Shown one piece after another: positions 6,968 through 60,830 of a stretch of DNA of 64,000 bases. Numbering within the stretch: position 1 is the stretch's first letter; every line of letters starts with the position of its first letter. A program made the translations under genes and the position numbers. The DNA comes from Pristiophorus japonicus. Lineage: Eukaryota. Location: NCBI RefSeq assembly GCF_044704955.1, contig NC_091999.1:16120001-16184000 (forward strand), in the 5' to 3' direction. The notes under the pieces were generated by a model. The model was not told where the DNA came from and ran no database searches. It saw nothing but the letters and a program-made list of their open reading frames with translations.

Positions 6968-8116
6968 GGGATTAGAAGGGGAAGATTTGCAGATGGGAAA
7001 CTGGAACCAAACATCACCAAGATCTCACAGAGTCACTTGATCCACCGCAACATGAATATCATTGGCCTTTGAATGTGGAAGGAGAAATGTTTGTCTCTTC
7101 TGCCTGCAGGCAAATATTCCAAACATCAGTGTGACTGCAAAAGCACTGAGACACACACAGCCGAGTGAGAGTGTTCCATGGCACTGCCTTTGGAAAGAGC
7201 TTTAACCAGTTACACAGCCTGAAAAAACATCGCACCATTCACAGCGCAGAGAATTTGTAAACGTATTGTGTGTGGGCGAGGCTTCAACTGATCATCCAAT
7301 CTGGAGAGATACCAGCAGCATGGAGAAACCGTGGGAATGTGGAGACTGTGGGAAGGGATTCAGTTACCCGTTCTGAGCTGGAAATTCACAAGCGCATTCA
7401 CACTGGGGAGAGGCTGTTCACCTGTTCAGAGTATGGGAAAGGATTCACTCAGCCATCCCACCTGCTGAGACACCAGCGAATACATACCGGGGAGAGGCCG
7501 TTCATCTGCTCCATGTGTGGGAAGGGATTCAGTGATTCATCCAGCCTACTGGCACACCAGCCAGTTCACACTGGGGAGTGGCCATTCACCTGTGTCCGTG
7601 TGTGGGAAGGGATTCACTTGTTCATCCAACCTACTGGCACACCAACTTGTTCACACCAATAAGAAACCGTTTAAATGTTCTGACTGTGAGAAGAGCTTTA
7701 AAACCAGAAATGATCTGAGGAAACACCAATGCACTCACACTGGGGAGAGGCCGTTCACCTGCTCCGTCTGTGGGAAGCGATTTACTGCTCCATACAACCT
7801 GCTGACACACCAGCGAGTTCACATTGGGGAGAGGCCGTTCACTTGCTCAGAGTGTGGGAAGCGATTCACTCAGAAATCCAACCTGCTGACACACCAGCGG
7901 GTTCGCACTGAGGAGAGGCCATTCACATGTTCCATCTGTTGGAAGGGATTCACTGCCCCATACAACCTGCTGAGACACCTGCGAGTTCACAAGTGACTGC
8001 AGGGTTGGATTCTGCTGTGAATCACATCAGGACTGAATCGTGTTCATTCTGACAGTCGGGCTGTGTTTCCCCTGTAACTGGGCTGGATTTAATGTTCTGG
8101 ATATCTGACAAATAAA
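6968..8116 (+). pseudogene. Tandem C2H2 zinc-finger gene, last exon, frameshifted
   Basis: Acceptor ttttcag at 6967; ATG at 7320 ([14 protein letters not shown]) hits TGA after a +1 insertion near 7371; second frameshift near 7593; about 8 fingers with TGERP linkers to stop 7996; C>Y and H>R ligand losses; three decayed fingers upstream; AATAAA at 8111. Confidence 0.88.
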
Positions 8117-22010: not shown

Positions 22011-22184
22011 CCTTTTTCCATGATTGGATCCTTTGGAGGATAAGCCACAGCCTGAGGTTTCACTCGAATGTATAACTGAAACCACCCATCCCAACGTCTC
22101 ACTGACTTTGCAAATTGTAACTTGATCCACTTTGACTTCCTGAAACAACAGAGGCAGAACTCCCAGAAGACAGCGACTGGAAGC

Positions 22185-22990
22185 CAAAGTGCCTTGCTCC
22201 AGTCGCAGTGCATCCCTCCCCAGCGGAAGTGCCTTACTCCAGTCCTAGTAAATGCCTCCCCAGCCAAAGTGCCTTAACCCGATCCAGTGCATGCATCCCA
22301 GTGCCAAAGTGCCTTACCACAGACCCAGTGCATGCCTCCCCCAGCAAAAGTGCCTTACCCCAGTCCCAGTATATGCCTCCCAGAGGCGAAGTGCCTTACC
22401 CCAGTATATGCCTCCCCCAGCCAAAGTGCCTTACCCCAGTCGCAGTACACGCCTCCCCCAGCCAACGTGCCTTACCCCAGTCCCAGTGGAAGTCTCCTCC
22501 AGCCGAAGTGCCTTACCCCACTCTGAGTGCATGCCTCCACCAGACGAAGTGACTTATCCCAGTCCCAGTGCAGGCTTCCCCCAGCTGGAGTGCTTTATAC
22601 CAGTCCCAGTGCATGCCTCCCCCAGCCGAAGTGCCTTACCCCAGTCCCAGTATATGCATCCCCCAGCCAAAGTGCCTTACCCCAATCCCAGTGCATGCAT
22701 CTCCCAGCCGAAGTGCCTTACCTCATTCCAAGTGCATGCCCCCACCCCAGCTAAAGTGCCTTACCCCAGTCCCAGTGCATGCCTCCCCCAGCCCAAGTCC
22801 CTTACCCCAGTCCCAGTGCACGCCTCCCCCAGCTGAAGTGCCTTAGCCAGTCCAAGTGTATGCCTCCCCCAGCCGAAGTGCCTTACCCTAGTTCCAGTGC
22901 AAGCCTCCCCCATCCAAAGTGCATTACTGCAGTCCGACTGCCTTACCCCAGTCCCAGTGCACGCCTCCCCCAGCCCAAGTGCCTTAACCG
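22185..22990. repeat. 41-bp tandem repeat (ccgaagtgccttaccccagtcccagtgcatgcctcccccag)
   Basis: About 19 units. Confidence 0.92.
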
Positions 22991-23427: not shown

Positions 23428-23862
23428 TGGGCCAGCCCGGCTCATCCTATTGGGCCAGCCCGGGCTCGCCCTATTGGGCCAGCCTGAGCTCACCATATTG
23501 GGCCAGCACTGGCTCATCCTATTGGGCCAGCATGGGCTCACCCGATTGGGCCTGCCTGGGCTCATCCTATTGGGCTAGCACAGGCACACCCTATTGGGCC
23601 AGCCTGGGCTCACCCGATTGAGCCAGCCTGGGCTCGCCCTATTGGATCAACCCGGCTCACCCTATTGGGCCAGCATGGGCTCACCCTATTGGGCCAGCAT
23701 GGGCTCACGCTATTGGGCTAGCCCGGGCTCACACTATTATGCCAGCTCGGGCTCACCCTATTGGGCCAGCATGGGCTCACCCTATTGGGCCAGCCTGGCT
23801 CATCCTATTGGGCCAGCACAGGCTCACCCTATTGCGCCAGCACAGGCTCACCCTATTGGGGG
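23428..23862. repeat. 24-bp tandem repeat (gggctcaccctattgggccagcat)
   Basis: About 18 units, most containing ATTGG. Confidence 0.92.
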
Positions 23863-24439: not shown

Positions 24440-24860
24440 GGATTGGGCCTGTACTCTCTGGAGTTTAGAATAATGAGACGTGATCTGATTGAAACATAAG
24501 ATTCTGAGGGCGCTTGACAAGTTAAATGCTGAAGGTTTGTTTTCCCCGGCTGGACACTCGAGAACTAGGGAGCACTCTCTCCGGATAAAGGATCGGCCAT
24601 TTAAGACGGAGATGAGGAGGAATTTCTTCACTCAGAGGGTTGTGAATGTTTGGAATTCCCTGCCCCAGACGGCTGTGGATGCTGAGTCTCTAAATAAATT
24701 CAAAGGCTCAAATAGTTAGATTTTTGGACTCTAGGAGAAGCAACGGATATGCTATCGGGCGGGAAAGTGGAGTTGAGGTCGATAATGAGCCCGGATCTTA
24801 TTGAATGGCGGAGTAGACTCGAGGGTCCGTCGGGCCTACTCCTTCTCCTATTTCTCATGT
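24440..24860 (+). mobile_element. CR1 3' end
   Basis: Reads FKTEMRRNFFTQRVVNVWNSLP, followed by the CR1 3' UTR. Confidence 0.85.
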
Positions 24861-25361: not shown

Positions 25362-25489
25362 CTTCACCAGAGTGACGGCAGTGCTGTAGGAAATGCTCAG
25401 GAAGAACAGGATGATGAATGTGGAAGCGGTTGTCCAGATGTTGCCGCTCTCGTCCTCATAGTCTTCATTCCAGATGTGGTCTGAGGAAT
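25362..25489 (-). CDS. IGHM: IgM TM1 exon
   Basis: cgtag|(D)SSDHIWNEDYEDESGNIWTTASTFIILFFLSISYSTAVTLVK|gtggga; conserved antigen-receptor TM (CART) residues; absent from the ORF track. Confidence 0.95.
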
Positions 25490-28188: not shown

Positions 28189-28580
28189 TCATTGACAAGA
28201 ATTTACGGTGTCCATCAGAACAAGGGAAATGTTGACGAAACTGGGTTTACCGCTGGATTTATTGACGGTTCTGTTGGTGATCTTCAAGGGGATCGCTTCA
28301 TGTCCCACCACACAGGAGTAAGAAGCGCCGCTGGCCCACTCCTCGGCTGCAATGGATAGCAGGCTGTACAGGAAGAAGGATCTGCTGCCGTTCTCCGCCA
28401 TCACCTCGGTGTTCTTGTAGTTGCCCGAATCCACCGGCTTGTCATTGACGGTCCATTTGACGAAGATCTCTCGGGGGGAGAAACCTCTCACTAAGCAGGT
28501 GAGGCTGACCAACCCCTGAGCGGAGACTTCTTCTGCCGAGGGCAGGAGGACAGACACGGCTGGTTCCCGTGGATCTTTCG
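28189..28580 (-). CDS. IGHM: IgM CH4 plus secretory tailpiece
   Basis: gacag|(A)[62 protein letters not shown]-stop; internal donor G|GTAAAC at 28251 for the membrane form; AATAAA at 28145-28150. Confidence 0.97.
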
Positions 28581-29479: not shown

Positions 29480-29788
29480 CCTTCTCCTTGTGGATGGATT
29501 CTCTGATCGGTGTCGGCATATCCTGATGGCTCACCACGCAGTAGAACTTATCCCCACTCAGCCAGTCTTGTGTCGAGATGTTTAAGTTGCTGATCACGCT
29601 GTTGGGATCCTCTCCCGGTTGGACGGCAATCTCTGATTTCAAAGCCTCCTTTTCTCGGGTCCAGGTCACAGTGAGCCCATAAGGAGCGTCTGACACGACG
29701 CAGGTTAAGGTCACCGTCGCCTCCAGTAAGATCTGTTCCAGTGATGGTGAGCGAAGAGTGATTTTTGAATCGCTGCATGGGACATCCA
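29480..29788 (-). CDS. IGHM: IgM CH3 exon
   Basis: tttgcag|(V)[56 protein letters not shown]|gtgag; phase 1 at both ends. Confidence 0.96.
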
Positions 29789-31749: not shown

Positions 31750-32067
31750 CCTGAGATCTGCTGAAGTTATGGTTTTGCGTGACCCCTTGATGAGTGACCT
31801 GGCAGGTGTAGACCGAGCCGGTTAACCATTCCTCGGCGGGGACTGTCAGCCGACTGGCTGTCGAGAAGTTCCCGTTCACCTCAAAGACGGGAGAGGTGAG
31901 GAAGCCCGAATCCATGAGTTGTCCACTCTTCAGCCAATTCACAGTCAGTGACTTTGGCCTGAAATCGATGATTGAACACACGGCGCTTGCATATCTGCTG
32001 CTGGTGATTTGTTCAGTGGAACTCAGTGTGAGGAGAACAGTTGGAGGAACGATGTCCCGTTCAGGAT
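31750..32067 (-). CDS. IGHM: IgM CH2 exon
   Basis: cttgaag|(D)[67 protein letters not shown]|gtaag. Confidence 0.96.
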
Positions 32068-32523: not shown

Positions 32524-32823
32524 CTGGCATTGTGATGGCCCAGACCGACACACCACGTCGAACCTCGCAGTTGATTGTGCTGCTCCCCACCTCTGACTCG
32601 GTGATGGTTAACTGGCTGCTCTGGGTGTAGATTCCCTTCTTGTTGAGCACTGGCGGGTAGGTCTTCAATCCAGTGGTGATCGGCTCTTTATCTTTCTTCC
32701 AGGAAAGGCTGGTGATGTCGGGGGAATAGTCCATTGCCAAACAGCCGTACGTGATGGAGCCATCGGTGCTGGGTTGTTCACAGGAGGAGAGCAGGGCGTA
32801 GAGGGTGGGGGGAGACGGTGTTA
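32524..32823 (-). CDS. IGHM: IgM CH1 exon
   Basis: ttcccag|(V)[71 protein letters not shown]|gttag; closely resembles shark Cmu1. Confidence 0.96.
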
Positions 32824-33594: not shown

Positions 33595-34500
33595 AACAAT
33601 GACATGGACTTGGGTATAGGGAATGCAATTTCGAATTTAGAAGATAATGCAAAACCTGGCAACGTAGCCAATAGTGAACATGATAGCAGCAGACTCCATG
33701 AGGAGACAGATGGTCCAGTGAAATGGGCCGGAACATGGCAATTGCAATTTAATGCGAATCATTGAGAAGCGATACACATTGGATGGAAGATGGAGAGGCA
33801 GTATAATCTAAATAGTATTATTTTGAGGGGATGCATGAACAGAGATATCTAGATGTATATATTCACAAATCTTTGAAGGGGGCAGGGCAAACTGGTTAGA
33901 CTATTATGAAAGCGTATGGGATACTTGACTTTGTAAATGGGACATTGACTACAAAAACAAGGCGGTTATGCTAAACTTACAGATCACGTGTTAGACCTCA
34001 GCTGGAGTATTGTGCATAATTCTGGAACAACAATGTAGGAAGGATGTCAAGCCCTTGGGGAGTGTAGAGGGGAGGCTTTTACCAGGATGATGCCAGGGAT
34101 GGGATCTTCAGTTATGTGGAGAGATTGGAGAAGCTGGGATGTTCTCCTTAGAGCAGAGGTTAAGAGGAGACCTAAGAGAGATATTCAACATTATGACAGG
34201 TTTTGATAGAGCAAGTAGGGAGAAACAGCTTTCGCTGGAAAGAAGTTGCGTAACCAAAGGTCACAGATTTAAAATAATTGGCAGAAGATCGAAAGGGGAA
34301 ATTGGGGTAATTTTTTCACACAGAGGGTTGGTAATTTCAGGAATGCTCCAGGCAGTTCATCCTGTACGTCAGGAGGATTCATTTGCACGTTTACAATGAA
34401 AACCCTGGGGAGTTGGACTAAATTGGACAGCTCTTTCAGAGCCGGCACAGGCACGATGCCTGAATGGTCTTTTCAGTGTTGTGAGATGCTATCATTCTAT
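33595..34500 (+). mobile_element. Degraded CR1 3' half in the J-C intron
   Basis: VRPQLEYCA.FW and LRGDL.E.F motifs and a 3' tail. Confidence 0.8.
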
Positions 34501-38237: not shown

Positions 38238-39500
38238 AGAGCAGGATTTTGGAAGGCGAATAATATTAAGTAAATTAACATTGGACTTATAGCATATTTT
38301 AATAACACTGGGAGATATTATCGCATTATAATCGGTTGGTTAATATTAATTTAATTCAACTACATCCTGAACACGTTAATTATTCAGATGGCAATTAGTT
38401 ACATTTCGCACAATAAAATATCAGCATCGTAAACATAAATTAATAGTTGAATATATAATTATCACTTGTATAATTGTTATATTAAAATACCTTTCAATGA
38501 TTTCTGATTTCTAAACCCGTCCTGTTCTCTGTCTATAAACTGTTTTCAAACAGTTTCAAACACATATCGTGTTTGCATTCGAGCAGAAACCTGCTGCTGC
38601 CCGCTGACACCCATATTGAACATTGTAGAAACGCCTAGATTCACAAATTCTAGGTATTCTGAGTAACACAGGCACATCTCTCCTCAGCAGATCAACACTA
38701 AATCACATCACTGAGGGGCGGAATCCCTCGACAGAACCTTTCATGGAGCAGATCCTTCATTTCATCAACCCTTTCAGCAGAATCAAATGTATCATTGCAA
38801 AAAATCTCATTACAAAATCACTGAACCCGCCTAACACTGAAATAACTAAAGATTGAATTCAACAGAAATATAAAATAATGAGAGCAGAATTGTGATTAGA
38901 CAGATCATGTTAAATACATTAATGTTGATATTATAGCATATTTAATAAAACGTGATGATATTGCTACATTATAATAATGTTAATAATATTAATTTAAGTG
39001 TGTCCCAGCGTGAAATATGTTAATTTTTCAGTACTTAATTACAGTAACAGCTCACGTATTGAATCTGAGAGTTCGGGAACATTCGGTCAGTAGATGACAA
39101 TCCAATTTTCATTAAAAAACTTAAAATTCCTTAAGATTATTTACTGGTCGCTAAGCTTTCTGTTTTGTGCCTACAATGTTCTTTTAAACACATTTAAACA
39201 CAATGTTTGCATTCGATCAGAAAAACTGCAGCAATTAGTGGTCACCAAAATTAAACATTGCAGAAACATCAAACAGTGTAAAAACCATAATGTATTTAGA
39301 GTAACCCAGGCACATGTCTCGTCAGCAAATAAACAGCAAATCACATGAACAACATTTTCTGTGGAGAAAAAGTTGAATTCTATAATCACTTTGCAGCAGA
39401 ATCACATTGAAAATTGCAAAAAATCTCAAAACAAAATCCACTGAACCTAAGTTTCAGTGAACGAAATAATTATTAAAATAAACAGAAATATAAAATAAAG
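38238..39500. repeat. Diverged tandem duplication of about 630 bp in the J-proximal intron
   Basis: Colinear shared blocks ttatagcatattt, gtttgcattcga, caggcacat.tc, gcagaatca, attgcaaaaaatctca and aacagaaatataaaataa in 38238-38880 and 38881-39500. Confidence 0.8.
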
Positions 39501-39541
39501 ACACAAATACAAGAGTTACTGAATGAGTGAATGTTCCTTAC

Positions 39542-39609
39542 CTGCAGTCACCGTTACCATGGTCCCTTGTCCCCAGTAGTCCTTGGCAATGTACCCACTC
39601 CCGCAGTCC
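39542..39609 (-). CDS. Germline-joined D(D)J segment
   Basis: g gac tgc ggg agt ggg tac att gcc aag gac tac tgg gga caa ggg acc atg gta acg gtg act gca g|gtaagg = DCGSGYIAKDYWGQGTMVTVTA; no RSS between the D-like part and J. Confidence 0.88.
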
Positions 39610-39637
39610 CACAGTGACAGGAACCCGCACACATACT
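39610..39637 (+). promoter_or_regulatory. 12-bp-spacer RSS at the 5' end of the D(D)J
   Basis: CACAGTG + acaggaacccgc (12) + ACACATACT. Confidence 0.85.
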
Positions 39638-40044
39638 GCACTCACTCTCTGCTCAGTACTGACTCTCAACATTCACGTCAAATAGACATTCACTTCAAAT
39701 ACTCATTCGCTTCTGATCAAGTTTAGAATTTAGCCAACAGTTTACATAGCACAATTGAAAGTGAACACAGTTCTAACCAGCTCCCTGCATGTACCAGGCA
39801 CAGTGAATCGAGCATCACCTCCAGCTCTGCAATTGCTGACACTGTTAACATTAAACAGGAGCATAATGAACACCTCCGTTCTGTACATGGGTTAGTGTGT
39901 TAGATTTTTACCATTGAATTCTCAGTGTGTTAGTTTTGTAAGAAGCGGTTTATGGTCTTGTTCTGTACATTGCCGGTAACATTGCATTTGACACAATTAA
40001 TGACCATCAGGTTATGATGTAAGTTGTTGAATTCCCCCTCGATC

Positions 40045-40083
40045 TGTTCTTGTACAGGTCCAGCCCTGGTTCCTCTCGCTGTG
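40045..40083 (-). promoter_or_regulatory. 23-bp-spacer RSS of VH
   Basis: CACAGCG + agaggaaccagggctggacctgt (23) + ACAAGAACA, immediately after YYCARY. Confidence 0.92.
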
Positions 40084-40388
40084 GTACCTTGCACAGTAAT
40101 AGATGGCGGCGTCTTCGCTCTTCAGATTCTTCATGTCCAGCGCGAAGATGTTGTTTGAAATGTCTTTGGACGCAGTAAATCGGCTCGCAATCCCTGCGGC
40201 GTAATACTTGTTCGATGGACTGTAATACTGAACCAGCCACTCCAGCCCCTGTCCGGGAATCTGGCGGATCCAGTACATGTAGCTGCCACCAAGATCGAAG
40301 CCGCTGGTTTTACAGGTCAGTCTCAGGGAGCTTCCGGGAAACCTGATCTCTGCCTCGGGCTGAGTCAACACCACATCCGACTGGACAC
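40084..40388 (-). CDS. IGHV: IgM VH exon, unrearranged and open
   Basis: tttacag|(R)[73 protein letters not shown]. Confidence 0.97.
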
Positions 40389-40515
40389 CTGTAAAAATAA
40401 TCAAAATACCCGAAGATTCAATCCTGGTGAAATGATTCCTGACTCTGTAACATTCCAGAGAGAGACTAACACTGAGACAGTAACAGTGAGACATTGGACA
40501 ATAAAAACTACTCAC

Positions 40516-40561
40516 GGGAAAAGAAAGCCAGCAACAGACTGAGAGAAATCGCCGACCTCAT
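40516..40561 (-). CDS. IGHV: VH leader exon
   Basis: [15 protein letters not shown] c|gtgagt; phase 1, joins the V exon in frame. Confidence 0.95.
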
Positions 40562-40644
40562 CCTCCTGGCAATGTGTGGTGAATGGTACCGGCAAGAACT
40601 CACTGAACAAACCCACTCCCAGACTGTTGTATTGCGGTCCCAGT

Positions 40645-40750
40645 GACAGCAGTTAAATACCCGGGAGCTGGGGGCGAGGTTACAGGCGCCGCCCATTGAT
40701 TCACTGATAGAGGCGGTTTCTGGATTCACATCACACCTTCCACATCACCA
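40645..40750 (-). promoter_or_regulatory. VH promoter
   Basis: TATTTAA about 95 bp upstream of the ATG; TGTGATGTGA (TCR-Vbeta-decamer/CRE-like) near 40730; no ATGCAAAT octamer seen, as reported for shark VH promoters. Confidence 0.6.
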
Positions 40751-42274
40751 ACAGAATGGACTCACATCTGGACTGTAAATTAAATCCCTTATTTCCTCAC
40801 TCCTTCAAAGGGGATGTGAATCTCTGAGATTGAATTACATAATCAGGGTCTAAAGATACTGCCAGTTTGTGTTTCTCCATCTCCCGCTATCTATCCATGC
40901 ATCTGTACCAATAAAGTATCCCCTATAATCTGAATTGTTATCACTCTATGTAACCGAGTGCGGGAGATGGGTAATGTGATTCTATTTACGGTGTACTTGG
41001 CTAAAGCTACACACTTTTGGTCTGGAGATGAGATCATACTCCTCACATTACACAATTGTCTCTCATTGCATTTCACTAACTGCCCCTGAGTCTGTGACCC
41101 GACGACAGCCGTTTGTAAAATTAGCTGTCAAATAAGTCCGCTTGACTGATGATTAAGGAGTGAGTTGACGGAGACACATAAGAAAGTGGGTCCCTCCCGC
41201 TTCAGACCTGCGTTTTATGAGAGAAGCTTGTGAATCAGAACCGATAATGTGATCAGCAAACCTCGATATCCAAATCCTTGCAGCTAACTTTAATAGCGAC
41301 CGACTGTGTAACAGACACGGGTAACAGGAACACGGTGTATCAGGACATAACGATATGTTACAGAATTTCACAGGAATAAATGCTTCATCTCCAGCAGCAA
41401 CAGATCACAATCTGGGCATTTCACCACCCAATGGTAGCCTGGCTATGAGAGGGGTTGTTCAGGAACCCAAATCAGATCAAATTATACCGCACACTGCGCG
41501 GCTACTAATCAGGAATAATGGAGACATGAGGTTAGACCTGGCTCTAAATTCTGTGATAATATTAAAGAAGTGCAGCTGGCACTTCTCTGTGAGAATATTC
41601 AAGGCAATTCAACCTGTTTTAGTTACTTTGCGAATCCCACTCATCTCATCATAGTGTGGGGTGAGGCCATTAAACCTCTCTCCAAAACTTCATCCTGTAC
41701 TGAATAAAGGGACTGAATGGTCCAGAATGGTATTTATTTGGAAATAGTTTTCATTAGATACCGTGTTGATCAATTCATTATTTTCCGATCCTATTTTTAA
41801 TATGGTGAGCAAGGAATTTACGGAAAATCATTCTTGTGATGTTATACCATGTAAAATGTTTCTTATTTTAAAAGTTCGACTGAATAATTTCATGTTCAAG
41901 TAGTTAAATACCATCTTTCTCCCATTCTTGTTCACGCTATTCTGACCGACACAATATTTGGCAGTAACCCAACCGACTGCCTTCAGCGAGCCTCGAACAC
42001 CAGTGTCATTTACAGGAAGCATTTGGGATTCTTTGCAGTCCATCAAAGGTCTGTTTTCTCACTGCTGACCGCATGCCTGGAAGCCAACTTCAAAACCTTT
42101 ACATTGTCAAAAGACCTATTAATATACACATCTACCCAGTAATGGTACTGGAGTTAAATTTAATTTTTTCGTTGTGTAAATGTGTGGAACTGTTCCCATA
42201 TCCCAGGAAAAGAATTATATCCAATGCCTCAGACACCATGTCAAAAGCAGCAGTCAGCTGGAGTATCAGTACCG

Positions 42275-42458
42275 NNNNNNNNNNNNNNNNNNNNNNNNNN
42301 NNNNNNNNNNNNNNNNNNNNNNNNNNNNNNNNNNNNNNNNNNNNNNNNNNNNNNNNNNNNNNNNNNNNNNNNNNNNNNNNNNNNNNNNNNNNNNNNNNNN
42401 NNNNNNNNNNNNNNNNNNNNNNNNNNNNNNNNNNNNNNNNNNNNNNNNNNNNNNNNNN
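42275..42458. other. Assembly gap
   Basis: Run of N. Confidence 1.
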
Positions 42459-48554: not shown

Positions 48555-51500
48555 TGCACTAGACCATTTCTCTGCTGAGATTACACGAGACCCTGTCCCT
48601 GCTTACATTATACTAGACCCTGTCTCTGTTTATATTACACTGGACCCTGTCCCTGCTTACATTACACTAGACCCTGTCTCTGTTTATATTACACGAGACC
48701 CTGTCCCTGTTTACATTACACTAGACCCTGTCTCTGTTTATATTACACGAGACCCTGTCTCTCTTTATATTACAATCGACGCTGTCTCTGTTTATATTAC
48801 ACTAGACCTAGTCACTGTTTACATTACATGCGACACTTCTCTGCACTAGACCCTATCTCTCTTTATTTTACACTAGACATTGTCTCTGTTTATAGTACAA
48901 CAGGCCCTGTTTCTGTTTATATTACACTAGAACCTGTCTCTGTTTATATTACCCTAGATAATGTCTCCGTTTATATTACACTAGACCCTGTCTCTGTTTA
49001 TATTACAATAGACCCTGTCTCAGTTTATAATACACTAGACCCTGTCTCTGCTTATATTACACTAGAGCCTCTCTCTGTTTATCTTGCACTTGACCCAGTC
49101 TCTATTTAAATCACTCTACGCGCTGGCTCAGTTATTAATGTATTGCAACTCATCTCTGCTTATATTAGGCCTTAGATCTCAGATGGAATATTATTGACAT
49201 TTTTGGGCACCACATTTCCATAACGATGTACAGACACTAGAAAGGCGACTGAAGAGGTTTAACGGGTTGTTACCAGGGATGAGGGGCTTCAATTAGAGAG
49301 TTCAAAAGTTATAACTGTTCTCCTTGTAACAGAGTAGTTTAATTAGCGAGCTAATAGATCTCTCCAACATGCCAGCTTGTTTTTATAATGTAGAGGAGAT
49401 ACGAGGGGACATGTCTTCACCGAGAGGGTGGTGGGGGTCTGAAACGCAATGCATGAAATATTGATAGAGGCTGGAATTCTCACCATATTTAAACGATACT
49501 TGGATGTTCAATTAACATGTCGTAACCTACAGGTGACAGAACACGAGCTGGAAAGTGGGATTAGGCAGGATAGCTCTTGGTCGGCTGACGCAGATACAAT
49601 GAACTGAAATGGCCTCCTTCAATGTTGTAAATTTCTAAGATTCTATGATATAGTGTGTCGGCTCTCACTAAGCAGAGGTCATAGATTTAAAAGCATTGGC
49701 AAAAGATCTAGAGCGGAGAAGAGCAGAATTTGTTTTCACTCAGATTCAGCAGATGTGCGATGGAACGAATGGCTTCCTTTATGCCGTAATTGTCTGTGAC
49801 ACTATGAAATCACAGCAGATTGTTTCTCAGTTATTACTCCACTACACCATGTCTCTGTTTATATTACACTAGACTCTGCCACTATTTATATTACATTAGA
49901 CCCTCTCTCTATTTATATTACGCTAGATCCTGTCTCAGTTTATATTACACTAGAGCCTGTCTCTGTTTATATCACACTCGACCCTGTCTCTGTTTATATT
50001 GCACTATACCCTGTCTATGTTTATATTACACTAGACCCTGTCTCTGCTTATGCTACACCAGATCCTCTCTCTGTATATAATATACTAGACCCTCAAAATA
50101 ACGGGCTGCCCATTTAACCTGAGATGAGGAGAAATTTCTTCTCTCAGAGGGCTGTAAATCTATGGAATTCTCTGCCACGGAGAGCTGTGGAGGCTAGGTC
50201 ATTGAATATATTGAAGGCGGAGATAGATCGATCTTTGAGCGATAAGGGAATAGATGGTATGGGGAGCGGGCAGGGAAGTGGGGCTGAGTCAATGATCAGG
50301 TCAGCAATGATCTTATCAAATGGCAGAGCAGGCTCGAAGGGACAGGCGGCCTACTCCTGTTTCTAGTTCTTATGTTTATATGTGCTTATTTTTATTACAC
50401 TATACCGTGTCTTTGTTTATATTACACAAGGTCCTGTCTCTCTTTAAATTATACTAGACCTTGTCCCTGAATTTATTACGTTAGGCCATCTCTGTTTATA
50501 ATAAACTCGACCCTCTCTCTGTTTATATTACACTAGACACTGTCTGTGTTTATATTGCACTAGGCCCTGTCTCTGTTTACATTACACTAGCCGCTGTCTC
50601 TGTTTCTACTACACGAGGACATGTCTCTGTTTATATTACGCTAGACTCTGTCGCTGTTTATATTACACGAGGCCCTGTCTCTGTTTATATTAAACTAGGC
50701 CCTGTCTCTTTTTATATTACACTAGACCCTGTCTCTGATTATATTACACTAGACCCTGTCCATGTTTATATTACCCTGGACCCTGTCTCTGTTTATATTT
50801 CACTAGATTATGTCCCTGTTTATTTTACCCTGGACCCTGTCTCTGTTTATATTACACTAGACCCTGTCCATGTTTATACTACACTAGACCGTGTCTCTGT
50901 TTATATTACACTAGACCCTGTCTCTGTTTATATTACACTAGACCCTGTCTCTGATTATATTACACTAGACCCTGTCCATGTTTATATTACACTAGACCGT
51001 GTCTCTGTTTATATCACACTAGACCCTGTCTCTGATTATATTACACTAGACCCTGTCCATGTTTATATTACACTAGACCACGTCTCTGTTTATATTACAC
51101 GAGACCCTGTCTCTGTTTATATTTCACTAGATTATGTCCCTGTTTATTTTACCCTGGACCCTGTCTCTGTTTATATTACACTAGACCCTGTCCATGTTTA
51201 TATTACACTAGACCGTGTCTCTGTTTATATTACAGTAGACCCTGTCTCTTTTTATATTACACTAGACCCTGTCTCTGATTATATTACACTAGACCCTGTC
51301 CATGTTTATATTACACTAGACCACGTCTCTGTTTATATTACACTAGACCCTGTCTCTCTTTATATTTCACTAGATTATGTCCCTGTTTATTTTACCCTGG
51401 ACCGTGTCTCTGTTTATATTACACTAGACCCTGTCCATGTTTATATTACACTAGACCGTGTCTCTGTTTATATTACACTAGATTATATCCCTGTTTATAT

Positions 51501-52025
51501 TACACTAGACCCTGTCTCTGTTTATATTACACTAGACCCTGTCTCTGTTTATATTACACTAGATTATGTCCCTGTTTATATTAGACTAGACCCTGTCTCT
51601 GTTTTTATTACACTAGGCCCTGTTGCTGTTTATATTACACTAGACCGTGTCTCTGTTTACATTACACTAGACCCTGCCTCAGTTTATAATACAATAGTCC
51701 CTGTCTCAGTTTATTTTACAGTAGACCCTGTCTCAGTTTATTTTACACTAGACCCTGTCCCTGTTTATGTTATGTTAGGCCTGTCTTTCTTTATATTACA
51801 CTACACCTTGTCTATTTTCGTATTACACTAGACCCTGTCTTTGTTTATATTACACTAGACACTGTCTCTGTTTAAACTACACAAGGCCCTGTCCCTGTTT
51901 ATATTACACGAGACCCTGCTGCTGTTTACATTACACTAGGCTCTGTCCCTGCTTATATTATACTATACCTTGTCTCTCTTTATATTGCACTAGACCCTGC
52001 CTATGTTATATTACACTAGACTCTG
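48555..52025 (+). repeat. 27-bp satellite arrays interrupted by CR1 3' fragments (49190-49640, 50095-50380)
   Basis: ctagaccctgtctctgtttatattaca; the most homogeneous block is 50500-51700. Confidence 0.93.
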
Positions 52026-53029
52026 TGAGGATGCAATACGTTTTTGGTTTGAAGTATATGTTTGTTTTGTTAACATCTAGCAAGAGCTATCTGAAATTTC
52101 TGCTTGATTTGGCATTGTTTCGTTAATATTTGTGTTGATAAGATGTGGTGACTTTTGTAACAATCTCCAAGAGATTGACTGGGATTGAGGAACAGGAGTG
52201 AAGGTGAGGAATAGTACACTGCACTTTGTACTACTTAGTGGCAATCTGTGTGTTAAAGGTTACTCATTCGCACGTGTGTTGTCCTGTGCCAATTCCTCCG
52301 AGTTCTTTAATGTTAAGGATTGTTTTTCCTGCAGTACTTGCTAGTTCGCTGTCACGTGACCCAATGATTATGTCAGGCAGAGCCTGGCAACTTGACCTCA
52401 CAGCACCGCCGGATGGGCGGCCGCGTGGTCCTAATATCCACCTGAAAAAATTCTCTCATCTCGTTAAGATGAACAGCTGAAAAGAGCACACACAAAGTTT
52501 TTGCTATATGTGTATGTGTATGTGCACGTGTGTGTGCACAAAACACATCATTCATTATGTGTGCATTCCACAAAGATAAATGGTTTGCTTCAACCATTAT
52601 TTTTCAGCATTTTATTATATTCAAAATGCAATTCCATGTCGTTTAATAACTTTAACATTTATTGATAACCCATTGTCCTGTATGCTCTTGTTTAGTAAGT
52701 GATGTCGCACTGACCATTCCGTTACCAAGGTGATCATATCTGTCGCTGTATTCAGTGGGAAAGGGGATTAAATCCCATTGAGGATAATGAGCAGCCCCCC
52801 GCTTTATTATCTAGTGATCACCTCACCGTCACACAGAAGTTCCTGAGATTTACCTCCACTGTGGATGATTAGTGTAAGTGTTCGTAAAAATGAAAATGCA
52901 CCTGTACCTGGCATGAGGTTAATACATTTGTAATTGTCTGATGTGTTGATTCTCTCGTTACACCAGACCCCGTCGCAGTTTTTACTGCACTAAACACAAT
53001 CTCAGTTTATATGGTTGATGTGTCTTGAT

Positions 53030-60697: not shown

Positions 60698-60830
60698 NNN
60701 NNNNNNNNNNNNNNNNNNNNNNNNNNNNNNNNNNNNNNNNNNNNNNNNNNNNNNNNNNNNNNNNNNNNNNNNNNNNNNNNNNNNNNNNNNNNNNNNNNNN
60801 NNNNNNNNNNNNNNNNNNNNNNNNNNNNNN
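60698..60830. other. Assembly gap
   Basis: Run of N at a TG-rich site. Confidence 1.

Follow-up and report, generated by a model that had tools for sequence, protein, structure and literature searches.

The minus strand of the stretch studied here carries a complete shark-type IgM cluster in which the V segment is free and a D-like sequence and J are fused in the assembled DNA. The sequence is from Pristiophorus japonicus (GCF_044704955.1, NC_091999.1, positions 16,120,001-16,184,000); we refer to this whole 64 kb stretch as the window, and all coordinates are window positions (Table 1). Several features by which a cartilaginous-fish IgM cluster is recognised are present, among them a split leader, a V-set VH that ends in YYCAR and is followed by a 23-RSS, a JH with WGQGT and a splice donor, four C1-set exons several kb 3' of the JH, a mu-type secretory tail and a transmembrane exon. 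Across the 64 kb there is one V and one J only. In protein searches run one exon at a time, CH4 matches a Chiloscyllium punctatum sequence with 78% identity and is therefore shark IgM; a Logan protein matches it with 87% identity over part of the query.

Table 1. Features of the IgM cluster, listed in the order of transcription, and the N stretches of the window.
Feature	Position	Strand	Details
Leader exon 1	40516..40561	minus	46 nt; donor GTGAGT
VH exon	40084..40388	minus	305 nt, open, end AIYYCARY; Pfam V-set E 1.6e-14
23-RSS of VH	40045..40083	minus	CACAGCG / 23-nt spacer / ACAAGAACA; directly 3' of V exon
V-to-DJ spacer	39638..40044	minus	407 nt
12-RSS	39610..39637	minus	AGTATGTGT / 12-nt spacer / CACTGTG; abuts DJ coding end
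DJ unit	39542-39609	minus	68 nt continuous coding, DCGSGYIAKDYWGQGTMVTVTA in J frame, then donor GTAAGG
D-like 5' part	39582..39609	minus	28 nt before GACTACTGG; DCGSGYIAK in J frame
JH core	39542..39581	minus	DYWGQGTMVTVTA, to splice donor GTAAGG; contigs of the RNA-like run X6 splice from 39542 to a CH1
CH1 exon	32524..32823	minus	C1-set E 6.4e-11; AG/GT borders; 6,718 nt 3' of J
CH2 exon	31750..32067	minus	C1-set E 2.2e-17; AG/GT borders
CH3 exon	29480..29788	minus	C1-set E 1.7e-9; AG/GT borders
CH4 exon	28189..28580	minus	C1-set E 3.1e-22; mu-type secretory tail and stop; internal GGTAAA donor for membrane form
TM1 exon	25362..25489	minus	..NIWTTASTFIILFFLSISYSTAVTLVK; open, AG/GT borders
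N stretches	42275-42458, 60698-60830		outside the immunoglobulin finding

An initial annotation, made from the letters of the sequence, had called all constant and transmembrane exons intact. This holds for CH1 to CH4 and for TM1, all of them open with good borders; TM2 was not located with a simple pattern. Two G+C-rich arrays lie 3' of TM1, one with a 24-nt unit (18.2 copies, 23428-23860) and one with a 41-nt unit (18.6 copies, 22182-22935). They give long spurious Pro/Ser-rich open reading frames, and the usual place of TM2 is in or near that stretch. Open reading frame fragments at 24489-24719 and 34139-34399, both on the plus strand, carry a C-terminal motif of the LINE reverse-transcriptase ORF2 type (..FFTQRVVNVWNSLP.. 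and ..RLRGDLREIFNIMTGFD.., respectively), and retroelement debris is thus present within the cluster and within the J-CH1 intron.

The VH is closest to a V region of the Heterodontus francisci immunoglobulin heavy chain (73% identity), and the leaders of the two are almost identical. Positions 39500-40120 were scanned for heptamer-nonamer pairs with spacers of 11-13 or 21-24 nt. Besides the 23-RSS of the VH and the 12-RSS that abuts the DJ unit, the scan returned no other comparable pair, so the stretch between V and J holds no hidden D, and the two free Ds of a canonical cluster are absent from the 407-nt spacer. An isolated CACTGTG at 39805 was considered as the border of a cryptic D and rejected, as neither a nonamer at 12 or 23 nt nor a 3' signal accompanies it. 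The expectation by chance was obtained with thresholds equal to those met by the cluster's own 23-RSS and 12-RSS, applied to both strands of the 64 kb and to block shuffles. A 12-RSS of such quality occurs once, at the cluster site (shuffle mean 0.10), and so does a 23-RSS (shuffle mean 0.18). Anatomy and scan thus agree with the layout that the initial annotation had described, namely a V with a 23-RSS, about 400 bp of spacer, and a single 12-RSS on a 68-nt D-like plus J sequence, with no other D.

The nonamer of the 12-RSS is weak, with only 6 of 9 consensus positions. The V heptamer reads CACAGCG, and both heptamers keep CAC. Read through as protein, the V signal (40054-40083) gives HSERNQGWT, compared with HSERSQVWT behind a Chiloscyllium punctatum V; the 23-nt spacer is therefore conserved between distant sharks beyond the heptamer and nonamer. 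A TATA-like GTATTTAA lies ~95 nt 5' of the leader ATG, and the immunoglobulin octamer (ATGCAAAT or its complement, with at most one mismatch) was not found in the 340 bp 5' of that ATG (40562-40900).

In the J frame the DJ unit is open, and no heptamer lies inside it; its segments are contiguous without RSS or spacer. Taken as a J, its 68 nt would only slightly exceed the longest JH segments known (about 63 nt in human JH6). The fixed part of CDR3 includes a Cys codon, TGC, at 39605-39603 (minus strand), for which the V exon offers no partner beyond its two canonical cysteines. This codon would be lost if at least 5 letters were trimmed at the V-DJ join. An open reading frame resembling D-mu, starting from an ATG in the nonamer, was rejected when reading by eye showed that its frame stops within the J.

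The sequencing data comprised four DNA-type runs from one sample and three small runs from other samples, all in the form of contigs. Runs from among these were mapped to positions 39000-40800. The DNA contigs of runs X1 and X3 (Logan) are 120-280 nt long, with many paralogues mixed, and no contig of run X5 was placed on this interval. Run X6, from another sample and another study, behaves as RNA, because the 127-nt leader intron is spliced out in one of its contigs (joint 40385/40513, cut +3, GT..AG on the minus strand) and the J is spliced to CH1. One X6 contig, record 18, represents a sterile transcript from a paralogous cluster. It reads ...AATGTAA CACTGTG ACGGCATG GACTACTGG..., so that a heptamer of its own precedes a plain 48-nt J, which is spliced to a CH1. 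Unrearranged IgM clusters are therefore transcribed in the X6 sample.

The J of record 18, the sole plain J that was compared, is a divergent one, with 4 of 41 letters different from the window J, and it has 8 nt before GACTACTGG. The 16 nt 5' of its heptamer are unlike those 5' of the DJ unit heptamer, and the 12-RSS of the window is therefore not the signal that belongs to the J of record 18. Relative to this J, the DJ unit has ~20 extra nt, which form Gly/Ser/Tyr-rich, D-like codons (GSGY-type) and are open in all three frames. From the J of this one paralogue and from the composition of the extra letters, we infer that ~20 nt of the DJ unit are D-derived. The initial annotation had taken the letters before the J core for trimming plus N or D2 bases. 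The paralogue has 8 letters at that place, and the 8-9 letters that directly precede GACTAC may belong to the 5' end of the J itself and not be N or D2 bases.

A second X6 contig, record 20 (396 nt, k-mer depth 6.4), runs from a leader (31/31 letters identical to the window) through a V exon (283/303) and three letters into 39608..39550 of the DJ unit (58/59). Its joint, 39608/40083, is exactly at both heptamer borders, with the V untrimmed, 3-4 letters added and the DJ unit short of one letter. The joint is out of frame by one letter, and the V is a paralogous one. The V variants of X6 at 40187, 40197, 40201 and 40260 recur in DNA contigs of X1 and X3; the V of record 20 is therefore a germline paralogue and not the window V after hypermutation. 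Record 20 thus places the D-J junction in another animal, on a sister V. Record 20 shows a DJ unit of this sequence joined to a V at its 12-RSS, and the RNA itself may stem from a sister cluster. It could also come from a fully germline-joined VDJ paralogue instead of a somatic join.

The same D-J junction on a different V in another animal would be hard to explain by a somatic event. A junction shared with a sister V is what an inherited join older than the duplication of the cluster would predict, while a one-off somatic join would not predict it. Reads covering the junction had been named in the initial annotation as a check. X6 RNA has the junction at 58/59 letters, on a paralogous V. Among the X1 and X3 DNA contigs listed, none crosses from the 12-RSS into the DJ unit, or from D into J, with at least 31 letters on each side, and the DNA runs therefore gave no read-level proof of germline status. 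The suggestion that a single 23/12 join completes the gene is supported, as the two signals are a compatible pair and a V-to-DJ joint is seen on the same DJ sequence in the X6 RNA.

We consider it about 75% probable that the window contains an inherited (germline) IgM mini-locus in the V-D(D)J state, a reading based on the assembly and one RNA contig of depth ~6. The DJ fusion is probably inherited, common to paralogous clusters and used in V-to-DJ joining. RAG-type recombination in germ cells would have fused one or more D segments to the J, removing the intervening signals and spacers, and the fused unit would have retained the 12-RSS of the D's 5' side. Duplication of the cluster afterwards would then have left several paralogous clusters in the same state. 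In a lymphocyte, a single deletional recombination of the VH 23-RSS with the DJ 12-RSS would complete the gene. Only the V-DJ junction would vary, and the D frame and about two thirds of CDR3 ((D)CGSGYIAKDYW, with its unpaired Cys) would be fixed. The accepted explanation for joined immunoglobulin genes in sharks is joining by RAG in the germline (PMC2193156). For the present cluster, we infer the germ-cell RAG origin, and productive expression may occur.

One specific form of this reading is that the fused unit is D1-D2-J and that a canonical V-D1-D2-J cluster gave rise to it through two germline joins, one after the other. We hold this tentatively, as a possibility that falls somewhat short of an even chance. 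In a canonical shark cluster, about 400 bp separate the two Ds (PMC2435157), and the 847 nt that span V exon to J in the window equal in size a nurse shark cluster minus two intervals, which measures 809-832 bp from a leader-intron primer (PMC2435157). V-DDJ also occurs as an intermediate of somatic rearrangement, and prominently so in the Group 5 genes of nurse shark (PMC2435157), and two trimmed Ds could fit in the 28 nt before GACTAC. However, the 19-20 extra letters are fitted as well by one untrimmed D as by two trimmed ones, and the origin by two events that the initial annotation had proposed is not established. Its argument that a D1 with a 23-RSS cannot join a J with a 23-RSS presupposes that the J had the canonical RSS.

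The layout might also be inherited and yet a silent relic, never productively rearranged or expressed, which we regard as rather unlikely. The missing octamer, the weak nonamer and the unpaired Cys in CDR3 all point this way, as does the fact that the sole transcript with the DJ unit is out of frame and on a paralogous V. Among the X6 contigs, which come from one small run, there are no in-frame transcripts of the window cluster, and germline-joined H genes were not found expressed in the adult horned shark (PMC2193156). Against it, all exons that were found are open and their splice sites are good, CAC is retained in the heptamers, the TATA-like box lies 5' of the ATG and the leader exon is identical over 31/31 letters in an expressed paralogue.

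A different origin would be a D-less V-J cluster, in which a free D and its signals were deleted from a one-D cluster and the 68-nt unit is an ordinary (D2)J with a 12-RSS, without a join of its own. This is distinctly unlikely in our view. The letters just 5' of GACTAC could be J-derived, as such a cluster would have it, but the unit is ~20 nt longer than the plain J of record 18. In addition, a paralogue DNA contig (X1 record 3) agrees with the window in the spacer, in the 12-RSS and in the 5 coding letters that come first, after which it ends where the assembly graph branches. This would fit clusters that have a D-type 5' end in common and diverge beyond it. Least probable by far is a somatic V-DDJ intermediate from a lymphocyte, or an assembly artefact, in the reference: shark thymocytes and B cells often contain V-DDJ intermediates (PMC2435157) and no DNA contig among those listed bridges the junction, but the junction of a single clone would be a tiny share of the reads and would not win the assembly consensus, and the junction recurs at 58/59 letters in RNA of another sample on a different V.

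How does an inherited V-D(D)J cluster compare with known systems? The reviews name VD-J, VD-DJ and VDJ as germline forms (PMC5192425, PMC4279169, PMC3308330), and Lee et al. noted that VD joins, which are unusual in lymphocytes, are those seen in shark germlines (PMC2193156). With these germline-joined IgH genes of sharks, skates and chimaeras (VD-J, VD-DJ and VDJ, with IgM1gj of nurse shark among them) the present cluster shares the IgM type and, on this reading, one or more V(D)J joins in inherited DNA, of the kind attributed to RAG activity in germ cells with later duplication. In contrast, the partial forms in the reviews have the V joined to D, while here the V is free and the join or joins are at the J end, so the step that remains is V-to-DJ, by way of the D's 5' 12-RSS. 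In the literature within reach of our search, which covered few of the older subscription papers, we found no description of a germline V-DJ or V-DDJ cluster.

The geometry of the cluster can be set beside that of the nurse shark IgH mini-loci, in which segments are about 400 bp apart and 6.3-6.8 kb separate them from C-mu-1 (PMC2435157). With ~400 bp from V to DJ and 6.7 kb from J to CH1, the cluster matches that arrangement with two of its three intervals removed. A close likeness is the somatic V-DDJ intermediate of nurse shark, which also has a free V, a fused D1D2J and one interval of ~400 bp (Malecek et al. 2008, PMC2435157), and which demonstrates that a unit of this kind can be both formed and used by the recombinase of sharks (PMC2435157). 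That intermediate is somatic and arises in single cells, whereas the unit described here is part of the assembled sequence, and another sample carries its junction next to a paralogous V. The DJH intermediate of mammalian pro-B cells likewise combines a DJ that has a 5' 12-RSS with a VH that has a 23-RSS, and its last step is V-to-DJ. It is, however, made anew in each cell with D-J diversity, while here the D-J junction and the D frame would be inherited. In requiring a single completing step, the window cluster can be likened to the V-J join of light chains. IgNAR type III has germline-fused D1-D2, a free V and part of its CDR3 fixed; it differs in isotype, in having a D-D join only and in its free J.

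A J-side germline fusion with a free V extends the known pre-joining of shark genes and brings no new principle. It would mean that any pair of segments in a mini-locus can be fixed in the germline, in parallel with the unordered somatic rearrangement of nurse shark. Germline joining is a peculiarity of cartilaginous fish, and it is used to argue for RAG in germ cells as an agent that can reshape antigen-receptor loci over evolution. Comparative immunologists may find such clusters of interest mainly as a family, since in principle they are unsurprising. A natural heavy chain that needs the V-to-DJ step only would be well suited to asking what degree of junctional diversity is required by a shark B cell, and clusters of this kind would also suit the question of whether they are favoured early in development.

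It is a more speculative idea, and an improbable one at present, that the V-DJ clusters of this genome make up a selected, expressed subfamily that encodes an innate-like, semi-invariant IgM in which a single junction varies, the D frame is fixed and a hard-wired CDR3 contains an unpaired Cys. If so, the subfamily might serve early in life like IgM1gj of nurse shark, yet depend on RAG, and it would represent a third mode between heavy chains that rearrange fully and those that are fully pre-joined.

Two further repeat families lie in the window around the cluster. An array with a period of 84 nt at 7397-7991 encodes C2H2 zinc-finger repeats (similar to ..HTGERPFTCSVCGKGF..) and represents a KZNF-type gene or relic beside the immunoglobulin cluster. 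Several blocks of a large 27-nt minisatellite (unit TTTATATTACACTAGACCCTGTCTCTG) lie between 44701 and 52026; both orientations are represented, and the copy number reaches 61 at 50389-52026.
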